64,000 nt of DNA from Macrostomum lignano. Its lineage: Eukaryota. The stretch lies in the NCBI GenBank assembly GCA_002269645.1, contig NIVC01000206.1, positions 434,001 to 498,000 on the forward strand, in the 5' to 3' direction. Every line of letters begins with the position of its first letter. Position 1 is the stretch's first letter. The notes beneath the pieces were generated by a model. It was not told where the DNA came from. It made no database searches and saw only the letters and a program-made list of their open reading frames with translations. Below, piece by piece: positions 38,346 through 40,602 of this stretch. The translations under genes were made by a program, and so were the position numbers.

Positions 38346-38756
38346 ATGGCTCGCACCAAGCAAACAGCTAGGAAGTCCATGGGCGCCAAAGCGCCTCGTA
38401 AACGTCTGGCCACCAAGGCCGCTCGGAAAACCCCATTGGTAACTGGCGGAGTGAAGAAGCCGCACCGCTACCGCCCCGGCACTGTTGCCCTTCGCGAGAT
38501 CCGTCGCTACCAGAAGAGCACGGAGCTGCTTATCCGCAAGCTGCCATTCCAGCGGCTGGTTCGCGAGATCGCCCAGGACTTCAAGACCGACCTGCGCTTT
38601 CAATCGGCCGCCGTCGGCGCTCTGCAGGAGGCCAGCGAGGCCTACCTGGTTGGCCTGTTTGAGGACACGAACCTGTGCGCTATCCACGCCAAGCGGGTCA
38701 CCATCATGCCTAAGGATATCCAGCTGGCTAGGCGCATCCGAGGCGAAAGGGCTTAG
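38346..38756 (+). CDS. H3: Histone H3 variant: H3.3-type core with divergent N-tail (T11M, G13A, Q19R, S28T, A29P, P30L, S31V)
   Basis: Intact 136-codon intronless [42 protein letters not shown]...; core identical to the neighbouring H3. No histone stem-loop seen downstream. Confidence 0.96.
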
Positions 38757-40191
38757 GGCTCAAGATCGAAACGACGCAGGATGATAGTGTCCGAAAAGGG
38801 ACCTATATATGACAATAACTGATACTGACTTTCCTCTCTAAATGTTGTAAAATTCCCTCTTCAAACTATTTGAAATACAGTGTAAAGCCATCAATATAAA
38901 ACTTTCATATCAGAACCGGTTCAAACCGGTTTAGCTTCTATCAATGTGCACGGATTCACGGTATTGCACAATATGGTGCAATAATTTTTGCACATTAATA
39001 AAAATTTACCGCAAATGTCCTTACTACTACCCAAATAAGTAGTGTAGTGTGGTTGTGCCAATTTTTGTCTTTAGAACCTAAAACTAATTAGAAACTTGTT
39101 AGACAAAGAGCACTTTTATTTCTTAGATATATGGAGCGATGGTTTAATGTAATTTAAGCGATAGATTATAATGAAGATGCACTTAACTACCCCAGACATG
39201 TAGTTGTGAAGTCAAATAGTTTAGCCTTTGCCTATGCACGGATCACGTCACAAGCAAGTCAAAATTCACACAATGGGTACAATATATTTTCGCGACTATA
39301 CCAAATGAGTGTGAAAATGCGCTTTATACTACACAAATAGGTAGTGTATTGAAGTTTTACGCGTCTTTTTAGATAAGACACAATCTAGATCACGGAGCCC
39401 GTAATCAAGACAACTTAAACCCATTTAAATGGTTTAGCTATTGCAAAACAAGGTGAGTCATTGTTTCACAATATTGTGCAATATTTTCAAGTACGATTAG
39501 ATGAAAGATGTGTATAACTACCCAAATAAGTAGTGACATGAGATTTTCTGAGAATTTTTTACAATTCAGATCGAAATACTAAGCACAAAAAGAACTTTCT
39601 AATCACTAAAAGCTATTTTTGTTGAAATGAAAAACATTTGGTTAGAAACTAAAGCAATAGTTTAGAACGATTATAACAACGAAAAAGAGCAGCCTAAACT
39701 ATTTAGTTATTTTTAGTAACGTGTATTTTAAAATAAAATAGGTGTTTTTTAAACACAGTAGAAAATGGTAATACATTAGACGATAATATTTTGATATTTA
39801 ATGAATATTTTTAAGACAGAAGCTGCCAATAAATTGTGACTATATTTATTATAATACCAAACTAATTAGCGACAGAATTGTATTAAAAAATAACTCAATA
39901 AAAATAAACGAAGGAATTTCCCTGAATTCAATAAACAGTTTATTTTGGCTGAATAGTTAAACTTGTTCAAAACCAACAAGAGAACAGGATAGAGAGTTAA
40001 ACTAACACGAACAGTCAATTGAAACATTATTAAACAATGGCAATATAGTACAAGAGATGCAGAACATGCTTGAATTTTTTTAAAATAGAGACCACAAGGA
40101 AAAACATAATAAAATATTAGTTAAGAAGCGAGAATAAAAGAAACTTAGCGTCACAGAGCGCACTTGTCAAAAGCTGTGCAACTGAGCCTTT

Positions 40192-40602
40192 TTAGGCTCG
40201 CTCGCCTCGGATGCGCCTAGCCAGCTGGATATCCTTAGGCATGATGGTGACCCGCTTGGCGTGGATAGCGCACAGGTTCGTGTCCTCAAACAGGCCAACC
40301 AGGTAGGCCTCGCTGGCCTCCTGCAGAGCGCCGACGGCGGCCGATTGAAAGCGCAGGTCGGTCTTGAAGTCCTGGGCGATCTCGCGAACCAGCCGCTGGA
40401 ATGGCAGCTTGCGGATAAGCAGCTCCGTGCTCTTCTGGTAGCGACGGATCTCGCGCAGGGCGACAGTGCCGGGGCGGTAGCGGTGCGGCTTCTTCACTCC
40501 GCCAGTGCTGGGGGCGGACTTTCGGGCAGCTTTGGTGGCCAACTGCTTGCGCGGCGCTTTGCCGCCGGTGGATTTGCGAGCGGTTTGCTTGGTGCGAGCC
40601 AT
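40192..40602 (-). CDS. H3.3: Histone H3.3-like (S31, A87-A88-V89-G90, S96), intronless
   Basis: Canonical tail with S31 and AAVG at 87-90. No 3' stem-loop; AATAAA on the coding strand near 39940. Confidence 0.96.

Follow-up and report, generated by a model that had tools for sequence, protein, structure and literature searches.

The gene pair and its regulatory context

The window analysed here is a stretch of 64,000 nucleotides (nt) from the flatworm Macrostomum lignano (assembly GCA_002269645.1, contig NIVC01000206.1, positions 434,001 to 498,000 of the forward strand), and all positions given below count from its first letter. It harbors two histone H3 genes, gene 1 for an H3 variant (38346-38756, forward strand) and gene 2 for H3.3 (40192-40602, reverse strand). 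Both genes are intact and intron-less, and each consists of 411 nt, that is, 136 codons plus the stop codon. They are inverted with respect to each other and converge on a spacer of 1435 bp (38757-40191), which is AT-rich (31.6% GC) and unique within the window. A tblastn search found no third histone gene elsewhere in the 64 kb. The two coding sequences (CDSs) are strongly diverged in a segment encoding part of the N-terminal tail and nearly identical over the core, and this mosaic is probably best explained by non-allelic gene conversion between old inverted paralogs, with H3.3 as the likely donor.

The Pfam domain Histone (PF00125) was detected in gene 1 at residues 7-132 (E 5.5e-47; score 159 bits, cut-off 26.4), and in tblastn gene 1 was 94% and gene 2 99% identical to H3.3. 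H3.3 carries a chaperone patch at residues 87-90, with A87, I/V89, and G90 where other H3 has S87, V89, and M90. Both genes encode QSAAVGALQ, in which A87-A88-V89-G90 is a patch of the H3.3 type. Residue 31, a Ser or Thr that is a further hallmark of H3.3, is S31 in gene 2 and V31 in gene 1. Because this V31 lies within the altered stretch T28-P29-L30-V31, we regard gene 1 as an H3.3-derived variant and not as H3.3 proper. Its tail carries seven substitutions, T11M, G13A, Q19R, S28T, A29P, P30L, and S31V (the initiator Met is not counted); between K27 and T32 all four residues are altered, from S-A-P-S to T-P-L-V. All lysines of the tail are retained, as are R2, R8, R17, and R26. The predicted product of gene 1 would thus combine the nucleosome core and chaperone patch of H3.3 with an altered tail.

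The protein of gene 2 (AAVG form, with S31) exactly matches H3.3 at 10 or more flatworm loci, in assemblies that we take, by their accession numbers, to be of the Schistosoma and Echinococcus type. In an exact look-up of this protein, only parasitic-flatworm chromosomes were among the matches listed. Judged by its sequence, gene 2 is an ordinary, replication-independent H3.3 gene of the flatworm standard type.

The surroundings of the two CDSs point the same way for both genes. The histone 3' stem-loop (RF00032) was found neither at the gathering score nor at E<=10 within 37500-41500, and the replication-dependent type was rejected on this ground for both genes. A candidate poly(A) signal AATAAA follows each stop codon, at 38997-39002 on the forward strand for gene 1 (241 nt past the stop; possibly a chance occurrence in AT-rich DNA) and at 39939-39944 on the reverse strand for gene 2 (248 nt past the stop). 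With the stem-loop absent and a candidate signal in place, both genes appear to be of the replication-independent type.

Candidate promoter elements of gene 1 are ATTGG at 38195-38199 and CCAAT at 38216-38220 on the forward strand, 130-150 nt upstream of the ATG, and no TATA box was found upstream of this gene. Gene 2 has a candidate TATAAA (as TATAAAG, in GCAGTATAAAGAG) at 40751-40756 on the reverse strand, 154 nt upstream of the ATG, and no CCAAT within ~400 nt upstream. The upstream regions are unrelated, and the promoter architecture of the two genes seems to differ. The ATG of gene 1 is preceded by 72 stop-free codons in frame (38130-38345), so that a mechanical open reading frame (ORF) of 208 amino acids (aa) results. 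A protein lengthened at its N terminus to begin with the ATG at 38130 was rejected, as the added stretch lacks any domain match and includes the CCAAT boxes; it probably does not code for protein, and a prokaryote-style gene caller would mis-call it.

Mosaic divergence and probable gene conversion

We compared gene 1 and gene 2 codon by codon and found 34 differences in 411 nt, which are distributed very unevenly. In the diverged tail-coding segment (38364-38441 in gene 1, forward strand; 40507-40584 in gene 2), 27 of 78 nt differ, corresponding to 65% identity, and the longest common run is 10 nt. These 27 differences all fall within 38366-38441 and affect 12 codons only synonymously and 7 codons non-synonymously. 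The homogenised tract follows immediately and extends from T32 to E133 (38442-38746 in gene 1, forward strand); its counterpart in gene 2 (40202-40506, reverse strand) is assigned by coordinate mapping and, by the base composition of third codon positions described below, is the probable donor sequence. Over these 305 nt there are only two differences, both silent (38486 and 38492). They lie in the first 51 nt, and the next 254 nt contain none, giving a perfect run of 38493-38746 in gene 1 with 40202-40455 in gene 2. An independent repeat search of the window reported the same region as a 314-nt inverted repeat of 98% identity. The 3' edge of the tract is marked by the diverged end of the CDS (38747-38756, forward strand; counterpart 40192-40201), where the last 10 nt, within the three final codons plus stop, show 5 differences that are silent or concern the stop codon, so that E-R-A is unchanged. 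Beyond the CDSs, no homology above shuffled controls was detected in 400 nt on each side of both genes.

An earlier note on this stretch of DNA had described convergent H3 ORFs 1435 bp apart, two silent differences over 305 nt with a 254-nt identity, 27 of 78 tail nucleotides differing with 12 codons changed only synonymously, and unrelated last codons, stops, and flanks. The coordinates and the codon-by-codon comparison reproduced all of these, with the flanks at the shuffled level. The note had also placed the conversion in the histone fold. This holds in that the core is homogenised, but the 5' breakpoint (38441/38442, between residues 31 and 32) lies inside the N-terminal tail, ~12 residues ahead of the alpha-N helix, and not at the tail/fold boundary. 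The homogenised part therefore takes in the end of the tail, including K36/K37, together with the alpha-N helix.

The two genes are also identical over the initial 20 nt of the CDS (38346-38365). Among other flatworm H3.3 genes this start varies, with silent differences per silent site (pS) of 0.27-1.09. Just ahead of the ATG (38335-38345), ~8 of 11 nt match between the genes (ACCCnGC-ATG). The identical start may be another, smaller patch of conversion, or may reflect constraint on the initiation context.

The contrast between tail and core was quantified by the Nei-Gojobori method, with codons numbered from the initiator Met as 1. In tail codons 7-32, pS was 0.73, which is saturated, and the corresponding value for replacement sites (pN) was 0.20; in core codons 33-133, pS was 0.026 and pN was 0. 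The difference in silent divergence between tail and core was highly significant (Fisher p = 7e-12). The earlier note had asked for a test of the GENECONV type, in which a common fragment must far exceed the length expected from the overall divergence. The 254-nt gap free of differences does so: none of 200,000 permutations reached such a length, whether all sites or third positions only were shuffled. As a control, we used ten flatworm H3.3 genes (L001-L010), all encoding the exact gene 2 protein, in 45 pairwise comparisons. Their silent divergence was similar in both parts (mean 0.65 in the tail and 0.75 in the core), and the lowest core/tail ratio among the 45 pairs was 0.43, compared with 0.036 for gene 1 and gene 2. 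A chance origin of the tail/core contrast is excluded. The tail of the variant is equally distant from all H3.3 genes considered, with pS of 0.73 to its neighbour and 0.76-0.93 to the H3.3 of parasitic flatworms.

Simple duplication had been judged insufficient in the earlier note, and values of pS as far apart as 0.73 and 0.026 within one ORF bear this out. Retrocopying and recent duplication were also rejected, as flank homology was not found. The near-identical block is internal to the CDS and flanked by strong divergence: 5' of it pS is 0.73, and 3' of it 5 of 10 nt differ before the sequence becomes unrelated. Because the block is bounded by divergence at either end, a conversion tract is the best explanation, as the note had proposed for this inverted pair, and gene 1 is best explained as an old, lineage-restricted paralog of H3.3 that lies 1.4 kb away in inverted orientation.

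In principle, gene 1 might instead stem from a young duplication of the entire H3.3 gene, its tail having later been swapped in from a third, divergent H3, or it might be a decaying pseudogene with a refreshed core, since the mosaic alone is formally silent on which part is foreign and the window offers no third H3 gene for comparison. We consider this very unlikely. A young duplicate should have homologous flanks, of which none were detectable, and it would require two separate replacements, one of the 5' tail and one of the last codons at the 3' end; moreover, third-position composition is heterogeneous in the variant, and its core matches H3.3. Against a pseudogene speak the intact ORF and the constraint on its tail.

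Conversion of this kind would begin with a break in one copy that is repaired with the inverted paralog, on either the same or the sister chromatid, as template, by a non-allelic route such as synthesis-dependent strand annealing. An internal tract of 254-305 nt would be copied, most likely from H3.3 as donor into the variant as acceptor. Lengths of 254-305 nt are typical of gene-conversion tracts. Such a tract would need homologous sequence at either end, and a heteroduplex mismatched at 35% of its positions would be rejected, which would explain why the tracts go no further than the diverged tail on the 5' side and the end of the CDS on the 3' side.

The direction of transfer was assigned in the earlier note to the H3.3 neighbour as donor. 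G+C content at third codon positions (GC3) suggests the same. In the H3.3 gene, GC3 was 22/29 (76%) outside the tract and 84/101 (83%) inside, a difference that is not significant. In the variant it was 16/29 (55%) outside and 82/101 (81%) inside (p = 0.005). As GC3 is uniform along H3.3 yet heterogeneous along the variant, this suggests that H3.3 was the donor and that the core was imported into the variant.

The latest conversion is recent, given the core pS of 0.026, and this is also what one would expect if there had been only one. In such a scenario, a single conversion or patch repair would have put the H3.3 core into a long-independent H3 paralog, with no ongoing process and no selection. 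One tract with clean edges accounts for most of the data, and comparative support for more than one event is absent. However, among H3.3 genes that encode one and the same protein and are saturated at silent sites, core identity is down to 73-78% and perfect runs measure just 9-18 nt; independent cores of this kind would be a poor substrate for repair. With runs so short, a first conversion could hardly begin once two genes had long diverged on their own. Within the tract, silent sites differ at 2 of ~14 in the first part and at 0 of 63 in the rest, an unevenness that hints weakly at two events or at patchy repair. We therefore consider a one-off origin unlikely. On this indirect argument, that a long-diverged core makes a poor starting point for homologous repair, recurrent conversion seems more plausible; the core would never have diverged far, and conversion would probably have kept recurring since the duplication.

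A further alternative attributes the identity of the core to the assembly, either through its consensus or through correction by mis-mapped H3.3 reads. The M. lignano assembly Mlig_3_7 was made from PacBio reads with Canu and polished by Pilon with both Illumina DNA and RNA-seq reads (PMC5730564). The expected high expression of H3.3 and the repeat-rich, neopolyploid genome would favour such an error. Mis-mapping is impossible across ~20% divergence, however, so that only a few differences in an already near-identical core could have been erased. In addition, both genes lie within 2.3 kb and can be spanned by single long reads, and the two surviving silent differences and the sharp edges do not resemble blanket over-correction. 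An artefact of this kind is, in our assessment, very improbable.

The variant tail and its relatives

All seven replacements in the tail are on the side of the variant, while silent sites are saturated. The ratio pN/pS in the tail is ~0.28, so the tail is not decaying; it shows purifying constraint, and gene 1 is for this reason probably functional. The change from S28-A29-P30-S31 to T-P-L-V puts a Thr-Pro site beside K27 and removes S31.

These features raise the possibility that selection maintains the mosaic, with conversion favoured in the core and opposed in the tail owing to distinct signalling by the tail. Selection of this sort is implied by the local system proposed in the earlier note, in which a nucleosome-compatible core would be kept under a distinct signalling tail. 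In favour of this, the tail is constrained and has kept all of its lysines and the four arginines named above, the changes cluster at residues 28-31, beside K27 and at S31, and the candidate elements of the two promoters differ. Selection can keep a peak of divergence despite conversion, both in theory and in opsin genes (PMC3924837), and there is precedent among H3 genes (PMC5435080). On the other side, the comparison covers a single pair of sequences, and the diverged block sits at the edge of homology, where conversion should be rare regardless. We regard selection on the tail as possible but tentative. A passive homology barrier at the tail explains the mosaic equally well, through rejection of heteroduplex at a tail diverged by 35% and through an edge effect where the homology ends. 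More doubtful is the fullest version of the selective reading, in which gene 1 would be an expressed variant with an H3.3 core, selection would tolerate recurrent conversion from the adjacent H3.3 gene in the core and act against it in the tail, and the pair would form a self-maintaining module of 'same nucleosome, different tail', possibly specific to a cell type (germline or neoblasts).

We searched for relatives of the variant. Neither the exact gene 1 protein (136 aa) nor the product of the extended 208-aa ORF was present in a collection of 15 billion proteins. A homolog search with the variant returned none above 95% identity among representatives of 90% clusters, where H3 fusions dominate and orthologs may be hidden. 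Two degenerate, back-translated patterns of the variant tail gave no matches, the first in metagenome, prokaryote-genome, and viral contigs, and the second in metagenome contigs, the sole set scanned with it. At the ten other flatworm H3.3 loci, there was no second H3 gene within 10 kb on either side. No paper found in a literature search linked Macrostomum with H3.3 or H3 variants. The 254-nt identical block makes short reads map to multiple positions, which may explain the absence of the variant from the protein collection.

Several points weigh against recurrent conversion from H3.3 into a functional variant. The collection that lacks the exact variant does contain other M. lignano proteins, so that the absence lends no support to expression. 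Recurrence and expression alike would rest on a single genome copy. The GC3 contrast could arise partly from GC-biased conversion and not from the identity of the donor. If the window is from Mlig_3_7, a few real differences in the already near-identical core may have been lost to polishing. Finally, the position of the diverged segment at the margin of homology does not allow it to be called a selected 'peak of divergence'. Conversion between the inverted paralogs nevertheless remains the probable origin of the mosaic.

Surrounding sequence, known parallels and significance

Within the spacer, four degenerate units of ~155 bp occupy 38900-39545 (59% mean column identity); they are absent elsewhere in the window, and each ends in a small palindrome, ACTACCCAAATAAGTAGTG. 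The relic of a retroelement is found at 37032-37560, 0.8 kb upstream of the variant gene. It is shortened and interrupted by stops, and it retains a CCHC-type knuckle (CSICNKPRHLAQAC) and the retroviral aspartyl-protease motif LVDSGAS (Pfam RVP and Asp_protease_2, E ~1e-5).

Farther away, a block of 6.26 kb (45154-51411) is 99.87% identical to the M. lignano contig NIVC01000504.1 (GCA_002269645.1), with different flanks. It includes a 720-aa ORF (47706-49868, reverse strand) that is 100% identical to BOX15_Mlig001506g19, has no Pfam domain, and bears the UniRef name 'ATP-dependent DNA helicase'. Long terminal repeats or terminal inverted repeats were not detected in the block, which has an internal 172-bp tandem pair (50384-50728). 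Its sequence looks like that of a young, recently mobile repeat, of which contig NIVC01000504.1 contains another copy.

An Rcd1/CNOT9 exon lies at 31093-31585 (Pfam Rcd1, E 4.5e-77), and its ORF then enters a minisatellite. No protein above 83% identity to this exon was found in the collection, M. lignano proteomes included, and the gene seems to be unannotated or mis-modelled in public annotations. Long, coding-looking ORFs at 10-1350, 22000-23000, 29133-30047, and 31600-32400 are minisatellite arrays, for example of a 12-nt unit reading SVSQ. Such arrays fit the high tandem-repeat content of the M. lignano genome, 15% of which consists of simple and tandem repeats (PMC5730564). The window also contains a relic of a mariner/Mos1-type transposase (17748-18746; HTH_48 and Transposase_1), what looks by eye like a KH-domain gene (PCBP-like; 1368-6255), and a septin exon (~22980-23266; Pfam Septin, E 1e-22).

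The closest parallel to the H3 pair is Cid1/Cid3 in the Drosophila montium subgroup, where recurrent conversion homogenises the histone fold and the tails remain distinct (Kursel & Malik 2017, PMC5435080). In that system, GARD placed a breakpoint at the tail/fold junction, and recurrence was established from many species with trees of the separate segments (PMC5435080). Both systems consist of neighbouring H3-family paralogs with a homogenised fold part and distinct N-terminal tails, and the functional speculation of the authors, a common nucleosome core with different tail interactions, would apply to both (PMC5435080). They differ in that Cid1 and Cid3 are centromeric H3s with long, fast-evolving tails, whereas the M. 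lignano pair is of the H3.3 type with a tail that is 77% conserved. The M. lignano breakpoint, moreover, lies near the junction but inside the tail (residue 31/32) and comes from a single genome, in contrast to the recurrence shown across species for Cid1/Cid3.

In the genes for the red and green opsins of humans, exon 5 forms a 'peak of divergence' under gene conversion (Fawcett & Innan 2011, PMC3924837). As in the H3 pair, most of the gene shows very low divergence, and a short stretch with the functionally different residues shows high divergence. The opsin peak, however, has converted sequence on both sides, which implicates selection, whereas the M. lignano segment adjoins the 5' limit of homology, past which just 20 nt are identical, and may be an edge effect.

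Lineage-specific tail variants derived from H3.3 are known as well, among them Arabidopsis sperm H3.10, which is altered near K27 in a way that changes how K27 methyltransferases see the tail (PMC8015243). Gene 1 resembles it in having an H3.3-like core and substitutions clustered beside K27 and at residue 31. For H3.10, a plant protein, however, both sperm-specific expression and an influence on H3K27me3 have been demonstrated, whereas gene 1 is known from its sequence and carries other substitutions (S28T, A29P, P30L, S31V). Non-allelic gene conversion has reportedly been discussed also for the paralogs of mammalian testis-specific short H2A and H2B variants (bioRxiv 10.1101/165936; 10.1101/2021.09.05.459003), which belong to other histone classes than the M. 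lignano H3 pair.

The pattern and its interpretation are thus already published for Drosophila Cid1/Cid3, and the M. lignano locus is no new kind of mechanism. It is the first case found for a pair of the H3.3 type, with an unannotated H3 variant of a model flatworm, and it adds a non-centromeric example to partial concerted evolution of the Cid1/Cid3 type. The identical block can also mislead the dating of the duplication. If gene 1 is expressed, M. lignano, a transgenic model for regeneration and stem cells, would possess an H3 that differs from H3.3 by only seven tail residues, four of them consecutive, and the pair would be a natural experiment on signalling at K27/S28 and S31 in an otherwise identical nucleosome.

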